Source: Geosiphon pyriformis uo1
Lineage: Eukaryota; Fungi; Glomeromycota
Direction of reading: 5' to 3'
Length of the DNA: 8,867 nt
Assembly: GCA_016748015.1 (NCBI GenBank)
Contig: JAAOMT010000727.1
Coordinates: 23,880 to 32,746, forward strand
Of the stretch, positions 1 through 8,867 are shown one piece after another; the stretch's first letter is position 1, and each line of letters begins with the position of its first letter. The translations under genes were made by a program, and so were the position numbers. The notes below the pieces were generated by a model. The model was not told where the DNA came from. It ran no database searches and saw nothing but the letters and a program-made list of their open reading frames with translations.

Positions 1-136
1 AAGATCTTGAAAATTTAAAGAAACAAGACAGTATATTTAGAAGCAAGTATTTAAAATTATTTCTCAATTTATTACAATATTTTTTTAATTATTTAGTGTT
101 AGACCAAATTTTTTTGTAGTTGTGCCATAGTTTCCT

Positions 137-266
137 TTAACCAATTGAAAGGGAAATAGAATTACAGTCCCAATACGTATTTGGGTCATCATCAGCAGGA
201 CAATCACAATTACTCAATGGCTTAATCCAAATTTCAGTACCAAAATTTTTCCACCCATTTGAAGAA
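137..266 (-). CDS. Probable terminal exon of a spliced host gene; Cys/Trp/Asp-rich C-terminus of unknown function
   Basis: A ~35% GC island (45/130) beside ~7% GC DNA (301-480). It is preceded by ttttttaatttacAG (AG at 268-267) and a CTAAT branch-like site (308-304). Only one frame is open: SSNGWKNFGTEIWIKPLSNCDCPADDDPNTYWDCNSISLSIG-TAA. There is no in-frame ATG upstream, so splicing would be required. Confidence 0.6.
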
Positions 267-477
267 CTGTAAATTAAAAAATTATTATAACAAAATAATT
301 ATAATTAGAAATAAAAAAGATTTAGTAATAATATATAAACTAATTATAAATTATATTTATTAAAGTATTTTAGTTTTATATATATAAACAATAAAAAAAT
401 TTAAAAACAGTATTTTAAAATTTTTTTATATTATATATTTTTAAATTAAAAAAACTTTTTCTATTTTATATTTTTTT

Positions 478-810
478 TCACAATCAAAACAAAAAATAAA
501 AATATTGTAATTTTTTTATTTTTAAAAGCAACTATAAAATTACTTAAAAATATTTTATAAAATACTTTTTTTAAATAAAATTATTATTAGCCAGTTTTTT
601 GTTGATTTTAAAACATTTTTTTGATTTTAAATAAAAGTTTTTTCCTTTTAAAGTATTTTCAAAATAATTAATAAAATTAATATTAGTATAATAAAATTTT
701 TAACCTTTTTAATAACAAATTAATAGTTAAGCTACTTTTTTTTACTATTAATATTTTTATATTAACTTAAATAACCAAAAAAATTAATATAATAAAAAAA
801 CAACCATTTT
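478..810 (+). mobile_element. Second decayed fragment, homologous to the 860-1580 fragment but in the opposite orientation
   Basis: 481-510 matches the reverse complement of 1207-1236 at 24/30, with 5 of 6 mismatches being transitions. 706-748 matches the reverse complement of 922-964 at 35/43 ungapped (FNNKLIVKLLFFTI vs FNNKLVNKLVFFSI). The blocks are colinear. Confidence 0.55.
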
Positions 811-859
811 TTTTTCTTTTAAAACAATTAATTTTTTTAAAATATTAAAAAAAATATTT

Positions 860-1580
860 CAATTTTTTTTTTTGAACATATTTTTTAAAGAAATAATACT
901 AAAAGCACCAAATATAAAATTATAGAAAAAAAGACTAGCTTATTAACTAGTTTGTTATTAAAAACTTTTGGGTTCTTAAAAAAATAAAAGCAATACTAAA
1001 ACTAACTTGAATATATTTCTTTAAAAAAACTTTGACCAATAAAAAACCAGCCAAAGATAAAAAAAATGCTTTAAATGACCATCAAAAATAGCTTTTTATT
1101 ATTACTAGCCAAGAAAAAAGCTTTTAAAATATTCTGTTTAACTGCTTTTACAACAAAAAAAAATTTTTTGGTTAAAACTTTATGAGATACCAAAAAAAGA
1201 TATTAATTACAGCTTTTTTACTTTTTGCTTTAATTGTAATTATAAAATTAAGAAGACAAAAAGTTTTTTTTTATTTTTATTTTTAGTTTTTAAACTAATT
1301 TAAATTTTATTATTGTTAAAACTAATATTTAAAAATAAAACTATATTTAATAAAAATGTTTAAATATTAATGTTGTTTTAATTATTAGTTATTTTTGTTT
1401 TTTTTTAAAGTTTTTATTTAAACTTGTTATAAATTTTAAAATTTTTAATTCTTACTTTACTAATACAAAATTTTATATAAAACTGCTGTTTTTTTGGTTT
1501 TTTTGCTATTTTTGTTGTAATTTTGTAATTAATTCTTTAAAATTTAATCTAATTAAATTAAAATTAATTGGTTTTTTTAT
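860..1580 (-). mobile_element. Heavily decayed repeat fragment, probably the ORF1 N-terminal region of a second LINE family
   Basis: Patchwork translation ITIKAKSKKAVINIF...VVKAVKQNILKAFFLASNNKKL...SLAGFLLVKVFLKKY...KNPKVFNNKLVNKLVFFSI looks like transition-eroded coding sequence and has a homologue at 478-810. The LINE ORF1 assignment rests on my recollection of similar glomeromycotan repeat proteins and is not verified. Confidence 0.55.
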
Positions 1581-1664
1581 TATATTTTTTTAATAATTAA
1601 AGTAAAAAAAATTTTGTAATTAAATATAAATAAACTTATTACATAATTAATTTATTTTTTTTAG

Positions 1665-1736
1665 TAATAAAAATTTAGTTATAATTGATTTTGTTTTTAA
1701 TAATAAAAATTTAGTTATAATTAATTTTGTATTTAT
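1665..1736. repeat. 36-bp tandem repeat, 2 copies
   Basis: taataaaaatttagttataattgattttgtttttaa (1665-1700) and taataaaaatttagttataattaattttgtatttat (1701-1736) are 33/36 identical. Confidence 0.9.
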
Positions 1737-1777
1737 AAATTAAATATAATTTTATTATATATAAAAAATACATAAAT

Positions 1778-1790
1778 TATATATATATAT
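1778..1790. repeat. Short (TA)n microsatellite adjoining the LINE tail
   Basis: tatatatatatat lies directly next to the T8 run. Confidence 0.6.
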
Positions 1791-1918
1791 TTTTTTTAAA
1801 TAATTTATTTCTTAAAATTTAACTACTATTTAATACATAGAACCAAATTAAGTGGCTCAAATTAAACATGATTTATATTTATACTACATATAGCCAGTTA
1901 TTTAGATCAAATACAATA
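1790..1918 (-). terminator. LINE 3' UTR with poly(A) signal and residual A tail
   Basis: About 120 nt after the ORF2 stop: AATAAA (+ strand tttatt 1804-1809), then A8 (+ strand T 1790-1797), abutting a (TA)n run. The AT-rich background weakens the signal. Confidence 0.55.
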
Positions 1919-2415
1919 TTATATATTTATGTAAACATATATGTTATCACTTAAACCAAAAAACAAAGGATATAATTTATATCTACCAAAATTAACAGCA
2001 AAAGACTCAATAATACCAAGCAATCTAACCAATTTATTTAATAGCATAAACATTATATTACAAGACAGTTCAAATATTAAACTGCTATTCTTAATCAATC
2101 CAGTTTTTTTTATATTTATTTTATGTTCAAATCTTATTAATTATGTCTTAATACAATACAATTTTACCAAATGCCTTACATATTTAATAACAACAAAAGT
2201 AGTTTCTTTTCTTTTATTAAAAATTCTAACAGATTTCATATACCAATTTTTTAACATAAAATTCTTACAGATTATTATATACAGATTTACATTCAAAGAA
2301 TATTCAGAAAGTATTTGCAAACAATAAAAGAAAATTAATTGCAAGCTCTTATTAATACAATCTATTATATAAAGACTTCAGCCAAAATTTCTTCATAAAC
2401 ATTAGCATTTTAGAT

Positions 2416-2463
2416 ATAAGTAAAGATATAGTTAGACAATTTTACCTTACTACACAATAAACA
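2416..2463 (-). other. Degenerate C-terminal Cys/His zinc finger of ORF2
   Basis: CLLCSKVKLSNYIFTY fits C-x2-C-x7-H-x3-C if His>Tyr (C>T) and Cys>Tyr (G>A). Confidence 0.7.
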
Positions 2464-2809
2464 CAGTACTCTGAAATATTTTTTATCATATAATTTCTTT
2501 TAAATTACTACTAACAGTTATTTATACACAGCTTTTATTAAGCACATATGCAAATTAGCAGACTTTTTACTAGTAAATCCAAAAAGCATATGCAAATTAG
2601 GATGTCAAATCTTAGCTATAACTTTCTAATTTATTTTTTTAATCAGCATATTTAGAATTATATTATAATCAAAACTAGTTTCTCATCAAATATAGTTAAT
2701 AAATCTAAATAAATTTTAAACAAAATAACAAGTATTGCCAGATATAGCTGTGTCTTTAGCCACTAAAAAACATTCTTGCATTTTTTTTGGCAAAAAAAAA
2801 ATAAACAGT

Positions 2810-3210
2810 CTTATTTACAATTATATTAGTCTTTTTATTATTAAAAATTCCTAAATAACTCTTAATTTTTATCCAATTTACAATAAGATTTTTATTCCTA
2901 ATCAGATTAACAATATGTCTTCTTTTTATTTAGCATTAATTACAAAAGTTAAACACAGCTAATATTGACTTAACTGTATATACATTAATAATAACTTGGC
3001 TGTCTAAATGTAAAATTACTATACAGAAAAATAAAACACACACCAAAAACAGAGCAATAGCCGGTAATTTAGCCATAGTAAAAGATAAAAATCCATGTAT
3101 TTTTACACAAATATTCATGTTTATAGCTAGAAAATAAGCAGCAGTTCTATTAGCAACATTAATAGAACCAACATTTTTTAAAGACCTATTTATATATACT
3201 TCTATAGAAT
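2810..3210 (-). other. Degenerate RNase HI domain
   Basis: EVYINRSL (cf. YTDGS), TMAKLPAIAL (cf. AELxA), LHLDSQ (cf. xDSQ) and WIKIKSYLGIFNNKKTN (cf. WVKGHSGxxGNxxAD) occur with RNase H spacing. Confidence 0.85.
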
Positions 3211-4049
3211 TAGACCAAATTTTATGCAAATAACTCTACACATTAAAAAACTCCCTTGAATTCAAAATGTTTAAACCAAATAACAGATTTGTCTCAGTTA
3301 AATCAATTAACAAAGACCTTTTATTATGTAAAAATTTTGATATAACCTTAAATTAATAAAGCACAGAGTCTTTAAAATTTAATCTCTTTCAATAGTAAAA
3401 AGTATTTCAGTCTATTATATTACCTTTTTTATTTAAAAGCTTATTATCAAATATAACTCTAAACTAAGATACAAAGAGTGTTTCAAAACAACCAATATTA
3501 GAAACTCACCAAAACTACAAAATGTATTAGAAAAATTGTTTATTAAAAATAATTCAAAGTCAAAAAAATTTTTACCATCTTAGCCAAAAAATTGTTTATT
3601 AGACAAATACATATTCTGATAAAAAACTGCAAAGAATTCAAAAAAACTTATCCCAAAATCTGCAAATCTAAGAATCTGTTGTTAAATAAGCATCTAATAA
3701 TATTTGAAGTATTAAAAAAGACAATTAACACAGCTAATTTTTTTTTAGACTGTATTTGCTCAAATGGTTTCAAACTATACAGAAAAAGATAGTGCAAAAT
3801 CTCATTAAGAAAATTACATGACAAATAAACTTTAGACTTAAGATTCTTTCTAATTATAACATTTCATTTGTAATACACACTTAATAAAACAAAACTAAAC
3901 TGAATTTTGTAATTAATTATGAGTTGCAAAATAGTCAACATTAAATACAAGAACTGCTTATTTATAATGGCTTTTCTAAAAACTATGTTAACAAAAAATT
4001 AAACATTAAAATAAGCCTTGGCCAGACTTAGCTTAGACAACCTTTTGGT

Positions 4050-5030
4050 TGACAAAAATATCTCTAGATATTTGTAAGCTTTACTCTTTTTAGCTATTAA
4101 AATTGGGAGGCCACTGATTCTTAAAGAGACAACTTTAACATTCTAATTGATAAAAATAGTTACAGTCTTTTTATTATTAACAGAAATATTATTGATTAAA
4201 AAAATTCACTAACAATGTTTAAAACATACTGCATAGAATCTAGATAATTCTTAACCTAAATTGTATTATCTACAAATATACCAACAGCAAAAAAAAAGAT
4301 ATTCTATTACTATTATCTATTCTGTCTATCTTAGCCACAAACTTAATATCAATTTGATATTTGCATAAATGTTTATGTCTTTTAATTTTACATAAAAGTG
4401 GATCATAAAATATTTTCTAAAAAAAATATAAGAAAACTTTACTCTAATCTAATTTATTATGTATTTTATATTTACCCAAGAGGCCAAAATTAGTTATTAT
4501 TTTATTAATTTTATTCTTATGTATACTGCCAAAAAATTTTATAAACTTGTTACACATTTTAATTTGCTATAAGCTAGCTTTTAAATGATATTATCCAACC
4601 AAGTTATAAGCTTTGTATATATGCTATAGGACCAATCAAAATTCTTTACTCTTTTTTAAAAAATGTTTAACTACTGATTCAATAGCAAATACAAAAGATT
4701 AAGTAGATATGCTTTTTAAAACAGAAAAATTATCACCATAAAAAATACCAAACTTGCAACATGCAGACAAAATCTGATTAAATAAAACTTTAAAAAAATT
4801 TTTCTGGTTATTTCAATTAAAACAATAAATCAAGTGTTTGTTAAAACTCTATTCCAATCATAAGATTTAGGAATTATTGAGACCCAGGCTTTTTTCTACA
4901 AAACTGAAATGCCACTAAAAAACAAATACATATTTAACAATTTCAGAAGACATCCTATTATATTATTACTATTATGCTTTTAAAGTTTATTAAGAATGCC
5001 AAACAAATTAGCAGCTTTGCTATTAGACAG
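4050..5030 (-). other. Degenerate non-LTR reverse transcriptase domain
   Basis: Motifs in order: KAANLFGILNKL*K (cf. KAPGxDGI), AWVSIIPKS...NT*FIVLIE (cf. IPK...RPIxL), L*HIYKAYNLV (cf. DxxKAFDSV), LD*SKVF (cf. QGxxLSP), catalytic FVDN at 4276-4265 (cf. [Y/F]xDD), KYLEI (cf. KYLG). Confidence 0.92.
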
Positions 5031-5889
5031 ACTATTAATTACCAAAAGCAATTCCTCTATACTGATCATTTTTATTATGCCAGAAAAAATATTATTATTT
5101 ACATAATTTAATAATATATATTAATAAACTTATAGATCAGATATTACTTGAAACACAGTTTATTTTTTTGTTCAACTCTCCATAATTTTATTAATACTAA
5201 GCTTTATCTTCTCTGGCTCTAAAATATTTTTTTTATTATCAAGTAATCCAGAACCACTTTGTAAAAAAACTGATCCAAAATATTTATTATTATATCTCTT
5301 TTATAAAAACAAAAACTTTTTATGTGTTTTTCAAATGTCTTTTTGATAGATGTTTTTTTAGCTAATTTTAATTCATAAAGCTTGAACTTTTTGTACTTTT
5401 TTCGAATCATTAACAAATGTTTGAGAACATCTATTAATTTTCTATTATTTTGAACTATGTTTATAATCTTAAAAGTCTTATCACTATCTAAAATTAATTA
5501 TTTTTTGACAAAACAATCAAATCCAAACATGTTATCTAAGCTTAACTTTTTAACAATCTTGGCAATTAACAATTCTAATCCAAAAAACTTTAAAAACTGT
5601 CTGTTTTTTGAACATTAAAACTCACTAAACTAATATTTAAAAAATGTTTTATCAACTGATTCTATCAACACCCTCTTCAGCAAACTTCATATAGTATTCA
5701 AATTATTATAAGCTTTTGCTCTTAAAAACTTATTCTTTACTATCAAAAGCTTGACAGAAAAACATTCCTTAAATTATATTTATTTAGCACTATCTGTATT
5801 CTTAATTTTGAATTTTCAATAATCTTTATTAACTTGTTTACATATCTTATTCAAATGAACATTCAAAAAACTATTCAAACTAATCAACT

Positions 5890-6572
5890 CTAAGACAATT
5901 TTGTAATTAGTGCCAAAAAATAGGAACACAAAGTTGACTTCATAATCAGCAACTATTAAAAATAAACTTTTACTCACAAAATGTAATCTAAAACTTTTTT
6001 AACACTTTTTGCATTGCTCTAAGTAGAGACTTTGATCAATAGATATCTACTAAATAAGTTGACCAAACTCAAATTCAAACAGAACTTAAAATTCACACTT
6101 TTTTTAAACTTATTTTTATTAAAATTTCCACCCAAAACTACAAAAGTGCTGGAGTTAACAGCTTTAACAATAAAAAAATTAACATCCAAAGCTTGATTAA
6201 ACTTAGCTTTAGTAAAAGCACCAGCATACAAACCCAAAACCATGACTAAAAGCTTGCTCTTAAAAAAAAACTGTACCAAAATAATGTAACCAGAAATTTT
6301 TTTAATCTTAAAAACATTTTAAGCTAAAAAATTATTTATAACAATAGTCATTTTAGCACTAAGAAAACTCTTATTTAATCCAGATGTGATTATTCACACT
6401 TTATTAAACTTATTTGCAATTAAAGGCTTAATATTAGTCTTTAACTTCATCTTTATAACAAAAGAACCTATATTATCCAAATCCATATCTAATGAACAAT
6501 ATTTTTTTGTTTTACAAGAACATTGATATCCTAAACATTATATATAATAAACTGTCAAACAAGACTAGTCAT
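5890..6572 (-). other. Degenerate apurinic-like (APE/EEP) endonuclease domain
   Basis: Motifs in order: YNV*DIN (cf. xNVxG), FVIKMKL (cf. xxETK), VLGLYAG (cf. xxYAP), VVLGGNFN (cf. GDFN), LDYI (cf. IDYI), GTNY (cf. [S/T]DH). Confidence 0.85.
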
Positions 6573-8470
6573 TGAGATAAAAGAAAATTTAAACCCAAAA
6601 CAATATTATTTATCTTGGCCAAAAAATTCATAACTATATCTGAAAGACTTATTAAACTGTCTTTCAATTTGAAAATCACTGACTAATATAAAAACATCAC
6701 TCTTATAACAGTTTTACTACTAGTTACTGCACCTAAATCCTTACTTATCACTATATCTGCCTCTTGATTCTGTGATAAAAAGATTACAAATAGCTGATTT
6801 TTAAGATTAAGCTGAGAAAATATTAGTTTAAATGCATCCAATCTCTTAGCCAATTTGTCAACTTGCTCTATAAGACTGATAAAACTGTATTCAAGAGCGG
6901 CAAACCTATTATTTAAGTTCAAAGACACCAATAGAAGTGGTTTAATATCTGAAGATAAACCAATACTAGAAAGAACCAAAGATATTACATAAGAAATAGA
7001 ACCACTAACAATTTGAGCCCAAGTCTTTCCACCAAATAAAACCAGATAAGCAATTGGCATCTGTTTTTTTTTATATACATTTGCTAAACAAATTTGATTC
7101 TGAAAATTAATTACTTGTTTATTGTAATTACTCAAATTTCTATCTACTAAAAACACATTAGATATATGACTAAATTGTTTGTATTCAGCACAACAAGCCA
7201 AAGAAAGACCAGTTTAGTACAAATATACATCTTTAAAAATCAGAGTATAATTAATAGCAGTCTTTTTAGATGCTTCATCAGCAAAACAAATCATAATATA
7301 TTTATTATACACATATAAATTTAGATTGTAACTAATAAAACAAGTTTTTTCACTATATAATCCCAATAAATCAAAAAAATTATAAGCAGTAGTACCAATA
7401 GGCAAAGTATATAACAAAATTCAATAAAAGTCTCTAGATACTTAAGATTGTTTATTATTGACATTCAATACTATATGCACAGAATTTTTTCCCATAAAAA
7501 CTGATTATTTGGAAGCAACCAAACCAGCAACATCCAATAACTTAAATTTTACTAAAGCCTTTTGCTAAAGACCAATTAACTGTATTTTAATTGCAACTAT
7601 CTTACTAAATTTAAAAAAAACTGATTTTATTGCCAATTTAGAAAGATTTACTGGGATTTTTTTGACAATTATTTTCTGATTTGTGTGATTGTTTATTCTT
7701 TTAACATTATTATTTACTAAAATTTTTTCACTAATAGCCAATTTCTTAGCTTTGTTTAAGCTTAGTTTAGAAGTAAAAATTGATCTAATGATGTCTAAAA
7801 ATTTTAAAAGAGTTGATGCCCTCAAAATCATTGACATAATATAAATTTTTTTAATAAATAAAAGCTTATCTCCAAAAGTTTTGCCAAGCATTACAAAAAG
7901 TTCAACATCCAAAACAAAAAACTTTATCAAACCAAAATTTTTAATCTTTTTACTTTGTGATTCAACTAATAGCAATTTTTTGAAACCAACAAACTTAGAC
8001 ATTAGAAGCACTAATTTGACATTATTATTGTTAATTAAAACTTTAAAGAAAGACACACCCAACAGTTACTTTAAAACATATATCTTTATTCATATTTTCT
8101 TTAAAGTTGTATTGTTTATTATATTATTTATTTCAAAAATGTTGGAATTTACATAACTTATTTCCTTTACAATTGTGTTTTTTATGTTTTAAATATCTAA
8201 TACTTTACTAATACTGGCTTCTTTGCTATTCACTTCATTACTCCAAGATTTTTGGTATCTATTCTTATTAGCTTACAATATATCAACAAATAAAAGACTA
8301 GTTAACAATTCTATCATATTATTAAGAACATCAGGTTTTTTTGGCTTCTTATATAAGAGACTACAAAAGTAGATATTTTCAATATATGCTTTTTTTTTAG
8401 TGCCAAACTGGGTCTTTAACTTAGCTGAACCAAAACTAGAACTATTAGCAGAAAAGCTTACTGGTTTTAT
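6569..8470 (-). pseudogene. LINE ORF1 (nucleic-acid chaperone), nonsense-disrupted, ~634 codons
   Basis: The four supplied ORFs 8273-8512, 7565-8062, 7214-7417 and 6683-7201 share one frame and join by reading through single stops, e.g. QLIGL*QKALVKF and ASK*SVFMGK. RRM-like segment IIVKKIPVNLSKLAIKSVFFKFSKIVAIKI...KALVKF; second RRM-like segment LLYTLPIGTTAYNF...ICFADEASKKTAI; degenerate knuckle C-AE-Y-KQFS-H-ISNV-F (7192-7151); heptad segment RFAALEYSFISLIEQVDKLAKRLD. The frame continues to ...LLSQ-TGA at 6571-6569. The start is inferred at ATA 8470 (mutated ATG). Confidence 0.85.
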
Positions 8471-8867
8471 AGCAACAAAAATAGGTATATTAAAAAAAAT
8501 AACTAAAAACAAAAAAAAAGGGAATAAGAAAAGCTATTTCTTTGGCAACTTTATTTTTTTATCATGACCAAGAAATCAACAAGAAAAAAAGTTTTTTTTC
8601 TAACCAATATATTTATTTTTAAATATTTTACTATTGTTTTTTAATAAATAATAATAAAATTAAACATATTAAAAATAAAAATTTTTTGTTAATTAATTTT
8701 AAAAAAAATAATTTAAAAATTTTAAGTAAATTATTAAAGTATAATATTAATGTTTTATTTTTATGTTTATGAAAAACACTTAAATTATATTTTATTAATA
8801 TTTAAAATTTGTTAATAAAAATAATAATATAAAAACAATAAAATAAAAATTAATTAAAAAAGCTCTT

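Follow-up and report, generated by a model that had tools for sequence, protein, structure and literature searches.

Several systems are known in which transposable elements (TEs) accumulate C>T changes, and the published signatures of such TE mutation are CpA, CpT or CpG (PMC4352252). Repeat-induced point mutation (RIP) of the Neurospora type, with its RID and DIM-2 branches, kills repeats by C>T changes on both strands and leaves AT-rich relics (10.1101/115501, PMC12543289); the DIM-2-mediated branch is CpA-biased as well (10.1101/115501). A k-mer screen of 1,239 genomes, the main text of which does not name Geosiphon, found strong RIP signatures in four classes of Ascomycota and nowhere else (PMC12543289), and RIP signatures also went undetected in Gigaspora margarita and Mucoromycotina (10.1101/2021.03.30.436303). 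In Zymoseptoria tritici, Dim2 raises C>T changes in TEs during mitosis (PMC8016269), TEs of Pucciniomycotina are hypermutated at TpCpG (PMC3318451), and in Arabidopsis methylated cytosines in the CG, CHG and CHH contexts (H is A, C or T) mutate faster (PMC12685076). Here we describe the decay of a probable full-length non-long-terminal-repeat retrotransposon (long interspersed nuclear element, LINE) in the fungus Geosiphon pyriformis. The window analyzed is a stretch of 8,867 nucleotides (contig JAAOMT010000727.1, positions 23,880 to 32,746) of the assembly GCA_016748015.1, which comprises 128.3 Mb in 792 contigs and is labelled G000 in coordinates; L-numbers denote the loci of compared copies and genes.

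The decay at this locus is best read as methylation-linked TE mutagenesis with a different sequence context, and not as RIP. With the Zymoseptoria mutator it shares the C>T excess in TEs (methylated TE regions in Zymoseptoria), a DIM-2-type enzyme with intact motifs and a gradual course, but there more than 98% of the C>T changes occur at CpA without depletion of CG (PMC8016269), whereas in Geosiphon there is no 3' preference among A, C and T, CpG is erased and the bias lies on the 5' side (T and C over A and G). Both-strand killing of repeats and AT-rich relics are common to Neurospora-type RIP and Geosiphon, which differs in having no CpA signature, no sign that duplication by itself is a trigger, no RID with an EQT/EET motif found and no bursts. 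The hypermutation in Pucciniomycotina also favors a 5' T, removes CpG and lies outside Ascomycota; in contrast to Geosiphon, where non-CpG cytosines are reduced by 40-50%, partial matches to TpCpG, TpCpH among them, are not elevated there (PMC3318451). Decay of plant TEs after methylation in all contexts is similar in the faster mutation of methylated CG, CHG and CHH and in a YC>YT bias (Y, pyrimidine; PMC12685076). This bias is unexplained in Arabidopsis, and the 5' bias of Geosiphon is therefore not unique in kind. The decay in Geosiphon is far stronger, with a fall in GC from about 50% to 23% and, it appears, even to about 9%, and plant methylation is written by CMT/DRM enzymes whereas the candidates in Geosiphon would be of the fungal DNMT1 and DIM-2 types. 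Depletion of CpG is shared with simple decay of 5-methylcytosine in CpG: at 168 inferred CG sites CG was retained in 0.7% of cells, compared with 33% for GC. The excess in Geosiphon is, however, not limited to CpG. No reports of such decay in Geosiphon or Glomeromycotina were found in the literature, the genome's own description paper not being covered.

The whole window including its flanks is duplicated on another contig (L002, G000:C512:66364-76015), and this segmental duplication, at least 8.8 kb long, includes a host exon. Because the flanks are shared, the differences between the window and L002 arose in genomic DNA after insertion of the LINE. The loci L009 and L010 resemble a second segmental-duplication pair, and both pairs serve as natural clocks of mutation. 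The window and L002 differ by 622 transitions and 54 transversions, L009 and L010 by 267 transitions and 19 transversions. After polarisation by outgroup copies, 452 of the 472 scorable changes in the first pair and 216 of the 233 in the second are C>T; T>C reversions account for at most 20/472 and 17/233. Both strands are equally affected (0.324 versus 0.326), as had been deduced in an earlier reading of the window from its letters (in the following, the sequence-only reading).

Pooled loss of non-CpG cytosines was highest at TpC (0.359), followed by CpC (0.273), ApC (0.175) and GpC (0.167), and the rates at TpC and at purine-preceded cytosines (RC) differ about 2.3-fold. The difference between YC and RC was significant in both duplicate pairs (p 1e-14 and 7e-11), and a logistic model identified the base at -1 as the strongest context term (odds of 2.6 if this base is T, 2.3 if it is C); pyrimidines at +2, +3 and -3 had weaker effects. 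A preference for CpA over CpY was not found in either pair (odds ratio 1.00 and 1.04, p 1.0 and 0.82), in line with the earlier view that the process is not RIP of the CpA type. The LINE sample consisted of 30 copies picked by their likeness to the decayed query, and young copies are not among them. TpC was the fastest context in 29 of 29 copies. Each copy had lost 40-52% of its non-CpG cytosines, which agrees with the earlier rejection of CpG-only decay, and T>C changes and transversions were mostly near 1%. In the window copy, TpC lost 56% of its cytosines and ApC and GpC about 37-38%. The loss of TpC and CpG reported in the sequence-only reading thus stands, but ApC and GpC were not spared as it had proposed: purine-preceded cytosines were lost only about 2.3-fold more slowly. 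CpA, which it held to be specially kept, mutates at the same rate as CpC and CpT. A 430-bp repeat family separate from the LINE shows the same order of contexts; its copies in L009 and L010 differ by 18 transitions and no transversions, with changes at 13/40 YC and 3/54 RC sites.

The GC content of the LINE is now 23%, compared with 48-50% in the inferred ancestor. This ancestor was not TpC-poor (TpC rho 1.04, GpC rho 1.03), an objection that the sequence-only reading had itself raised. A forward simulation with the measured rates yielded a GpC value of 1.62, close to the observed 1.67, whereas context-flat rates gave 1.08; on continuing the simulation TpC fell to 0.45, compared with 0.42 observed at positions 481-1620. 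Since the measured bias of about 2.3-fold suffices in the simulation, the GpC excess arises without sparing of purine-preceded cytosines. What the window shows is the outcome of a modest bias that operated over a long time.

The window contains the following parts:

90-275, minus strand: host exon of a multicopy gene family with 27 genomic matches and a cluster on contig C371; internal control with few changes relative to the duplicate L002.
276-856, unstranded: AT-rich DNA of 9% GC (ApC 31, TpC 10, CpG 0) in which the surviving cytosines are mostly purine-preceded; probably the end-stage remnant of a decayed repeat.
857-1285, unstranded: interspersed repeat of about 430 bp, separate from the LINE, with at least 40 copies of about 80% identity and sharp ends; may be a solo long terminal repeat, a miniature inverted-repeat transposable element or a short interspersed nuclear element.
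1286-1800, unstranded: AT-rich DNA of 8% GC adjoining the 3' end of the LINE (ApC 33, TpC 4), mostly without a good counterpart in L002 in the alignment.
1800-8470, minus strand: decayed full-length LINE (open reading frame 1 (ORF1), endonuclease, reverse transcriptase (RT), RNase H) with 29 other copies of 72-89% identity.
2750-3274, minus strand: RNase H domain remnant, found by tblastn with G. pyriformis PF00075 proteins (E down to 1e-34).
3062-3063, unstranded: first of three surviving CpG in the LINE (dinucleotide count).
3073-3065, minus strand: AEL>AKL lesion inside the RNase H remnant; AEL in three other copies.
4265-4276, minus strand: RT catalytic motif, now FVDN; FVDD in one other copy.
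5403-5404, unstranded: second surviving CpG (dinucleotide count).
6118-6129, minus strand: motif taken to be of the GDFN type of APE endonucleases, now GNFN (G>A); the D is retained in KDFN/RDFN copies.
6686-8470, minus strand: ORF1 remnant; the lightly mutated relative L021 has a weak RRM match (PF00076, E 7e-4, below cut-off).
6898-6899, unstranded: third surviving CpG (dinucleotide count).

A recount of dinucleotides on both strands gave 75 ApC and 28 TpC without any CpG at positions 481-1620 (the manual count had been 76 and 28), and 30 ApC and 5 TpC at 1201-1620, identical to the earlier figures. At 481-1200 GpC occurs 12 times per strand (rho 2.97), as stated earlier against an expectation of about 4, and the three CpG listed above are also the ones the earlier count had found in the LINE; a further CpG lies at position 176 in the host flank. 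The significance of these values was assessed with 1000 local shuffles that preserve strand skew. In 481-1620 TpC was depleted (z -5.9) and GpC enriched (z +5.1), and in 1801-8470 the values were z -4.7 for TpC, z +8.2 for GpC and z -10 for CpG. Enrichment of ApC relative to the shuffles was absent except in 1201-1620. The motif lesions FVDD>FVDN, GDFN>GNFN and AEL>AKL were borne out by other copies, in which FVDD, AEL and the D in the endonuclease motif are intact. The suspected conversion of Trp codons into stops was likewise supported, as 160 triplets of the window reading TAG, TGA or TAA, irrespective of frame, stand opposite TGG in two or more other copies.

The changes accumulated gradually. 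Runs of changes on the same strand or in the same copy did not exceed those in shuffles (p 0.3-0.8), and the changes in each pair are divided about evenly between its members (289/333 and 140/127). The ratio of C>T changes per C to transversions per site was 48 and 49 in the two LINE pairs, which differ in age. Accumulation is thus clock-like and not a burst; many small rounds would look alike.

Host DNA was affected much less. Seven gene loci have a CpG rho of 0.87 and a TC/AC ratio of 1.32, compared with 0.02 and 0.82 in the LINE copies. In the flanks shared by the window and L002 18 of 152 G/C sites differ, compared with about 33% in the LINE (p 2e-8); within positions 1-250 there are 6 transitions at 72 G/C sites. 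A second control is provided by the host gene L031/L033, which encodes a methyltransferase, and its copy L035, located 30 kb away and 90% identical over 1.1 kb. L035 is a broken copy without the stretch bearing the catalytic motifs, and is probably neutral for this reason. This pair differs by 40 transitions and 17 transversions, retains CpG (32 versus 33) and shows no 5' bias. Its ratio of C>T changes to transversions is 6 and not 48 or 49 as in the LINE pairs (p 6e-6). The claim of a repeat-focused process is therefore upheld, and the spectrum of the LINE, with its YC bias and CpG loss, is not found in probably neutral host DNA as represented by this one pair. Since a host duplicate 30 kb from its parent shows no bias, duplication alone was no trigger in this pair. 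The controls, one pseudogene pair and one flank, are thin, and they argue for targeting directed by chromatin rather than by homology. The guess that the DNA might come from a non-Dikarya fungus was correct, G. pyriformis being a member of Glomeromycotina.

Candidate enzymes were searched for by profile, exon by exon in spliced genes. The PF00145 profile identified seven genes in the genome. Two of these look DNMT2-like, and the other five are:

L034: DNMT1-like gene (PF00145).
L032: DIM-2-like gene, matching G9A89_017607.
L036: DIM-2-like gene, matching KAG9286299.1 of G. pyriformis at 98-100% exon by exon.
L031:1462-2807: small C5 methyltransferase with ENV in motif VI; the nearest Atlas clusters are bacterial.
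L035:1337-2437: broken copy of the L031 methyltransferase, 30 kb from its parent, without catalytic motifs.

The DNMT1-like and DIM-2-like genes, which the sequence-only reading had suggested looking for, are thus present and look intact. Both DIM-2-like genes encode RFTS, DUF7893 and BAH domains and have intact PCQ and ENV motifs. Their best PDB match is Neurospora DIM2 (229 bits versus 174 for DNMT1), and in a quick tree they cluster with ascomycete DIM-2 against DNMT1/MET1 with an SH-aLRT (Shimodaira-Hasegawa-like approximate likelihood ratio test) support of 100. In the same kind of tree L032, L036 and two Ambispora paralogues appear as an Archaeosporales duplication. DIM-2-like genes are present across Glomeromycotina, in agreement with PMC8298701. 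The EQT/EET motif VI of RID/Masc1, also proposed as a target, was not found; every readable PF00145 locus has ENV, and a divergent gene could escape this search.

Taken together, we consider it probable that the decay is caused by methylation of silenced TEs at CG and non-CG sites, after which the methylated cytosines are gradually deaminated and the changes fixed, and among the candidates weighed the non-CG methylation plus deamination named in the sequence-only reading fares best. Inserted copies would be packaged in silent chromatin, their CG sites methylated by the DNMT1-like enzyme and their non-CG cytosines by one or both DIM-2-like enzymes. Methylated cytosines would then deaminate passively or with help of the methyltransferase, and the T:G mismatches would become fixed. 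Sites would change singly and on either strand across many cell generations, CG being lost first and non-CG cytosines later, the latter at a rate about 2.3-fold higher behind a pyrimidine and where the neighbourhood is rich in T. The predicted end state is DNA of 8-10% GC in which the remaining cytosines are mostly ApC and GpC. We infer that the 5' bias is due to the enzyme rather than to chemistry or repair. This explanation is favored by the mitotic effect of Dim2 in Zymoseptoria (PMC8016269) and by the faster mutation of methylated CG, CHG and CHH in Arabidopsis (PMC12685076).

Several points weigh against it. The mutation linked to DIM-2 so far is CpA-specific and spares CG (PMC8016269; 10.1101/115501), the excess over host DNA, about 8-fold, is larger than passive deamination is said to produce (2-5-fold; PMC12685076), and the host controls are limited to one pseudogene pair and one flank. 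In addition, AT-rich and CpG-poor stretches of Ambispora (L041:15001-17980 and L042:17001-23789, a tiny unaligned sample) keep TpC, with TC/AC of 1.6-1.7. These stretches keep TpC even though DIM-2-like genes occur throughout Glomeromycotina, and the presence of such genes therefore does not predict the spectrum, which may be particular to Geosiphon. One Ambispora tile is CpC-poor, and a different mutational context may operate there.

A glomeromycotinan fungus thus destroys its transposons to a degree similar to RIP with another spectrum. Should non-CG methylation of the DIM-2 type be responsible, the irreversible killing of TEs by these enzymes would be older and more varied than CpA-type RIP and independent of a sexual stage. 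In practical terms, TE ages, gene models derived from repeats and RIP indices, which seek CpA loss, would mislead in the Geosiphon genome.

A tentative alternative is an active mutator directed at transposons with a 5'-pyrimidine preference, either a deaminating DIM-2 paralogue or a partner deaminase. It would be a vegetative counterpart of RIP outside Dikarya with a new context, possibly linked to the duplication of DIM-2 in Archaeosporales. The sequence-only reading had likewise postulated an undescribed genome-defence mutator; the hypermutation is real, but a categorically new mutator is not needed by the data.

A process akin to RIP, triggered by homology and with a new context, carried out by an enzyme of the Masc1/RID type during a cryptic sexual stage, appears unlikely. 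Near-pure C>T change on both strands of repeats would fit, RID is reported for arbuscular mycorrhizal fungi in a passage of PMC8298701 that cites an earlier survey, and L031, a small methyltransferase of ambiguous class, would be the candidate enzyme. L031 has, however, ENV and not the EQT/EET of Masc1/RID, neither CpA nor CpT is preferred, and CpG is hit hardest. Moreover, the 90%-identical host duplicate of 1.1 kb was not hypermutated at a distance of 30 kb, and the 27-copy exon shows few changes. The changes are also without clusters, although after many rounds of RIP strand runs would no longer stand out.

We regard it as similarly improbable that no special writer of non-CG methylation exists and that CG methylation decay acts together with ordinary cytosine damage poorly repaired in heterochromatin, the YC bias being generic. 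Accumulation is clock-like, the YC>YT bias of unexplained origin occurs in untreated Arabidopsis (PMC12685076), and the genome yielded a single weak UDG-family and a single HhH-GPD match (G000:C621:250264-250581 and C669:1077108-1077284) in a search blind to introns. A repair deficit should nevertheless raise transversions and T>C changes, and both are at about 1% while C loses 40-50%; the host pseudogene, too, is without YC bias.

A DNA cytidine deaminase preferring TpC or YC, directed to silent repeats or acting on their 5-methylcytosine, was the other candidate of the sequence-only reading and is now disfavored and rather doubtful. The 5' pyrimidine as the strongest context term (odds ratio 2.6 for T, 2.3 for C) and the rate above the passive expectation are what such an enzyme would produce. 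DNA cytidine deaminases usually show a stronger context bias than the one found here. Strand-coordinated runs stay at the level of shuffles (p 0.38-0.60), strand bias is lacking, and the decay went on after genomic duplication, which excludes editing of complementary DNA. The profiles APOBEC_N, NAD1, DddA-like and OTT_1508 gave no match in the genome, but the controls were weak or, for three of the profiles, silent, and absence is therefore not shown; the five PF00383 matches equal the number expected for housekeeping deaminases. Ultraviolet photoproducts at dipyrimidines, conceivable for a soil-surface fungus living with a photosynthetic partner and consistent with YC exceeding RC, are very improbable, as the 26 CC>TT doublets do not exceed the 31 in the matched independent class, RC sites suffer heavy loss too, host DNA is largely spared and CpG is lost whatever the 5' base.

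Technical explanations were rejected as well. An assembly artefact is contradicted by the changes private to each copy, and a short-read run from 2020, possibly of the source sample and then not independent, contains 73% of the window's words and several exact pieces. Local shuffles and the inferred ancestral states rule out an artefact of composition, and misalignment in poly-T does not account for the bias, which remains without T-runs (T.39, C.29, A.19, G.17).

The element is probably a LINE; its class was assigned by homology for RNase H and by short motifs only for RT and endonuclease, as the element is too decayed for Pfam. A blast search of the window for terminal repeats of the LINE yielded only low-complexity matches; by blast extents, homology to other copies reaches to about 8600-8800. 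In protein searches a decayed ORF2 piece had no match and a lightly mutated RNase H piece matched only G. pyriformis proteins, which makes an alignment of the TE to another species impossible. Two loci, L017 and L023, are identical over 2,636 aligned bases and both lie at contig ends, indicating either a very recent duplication or redundant assembly. Lightly mutated relatives of the LINE with 35-46% GC (L011:1-1379, L012:6300-7800 and L021:4466-5778) are already CpG-poor and form a gradient of decay.

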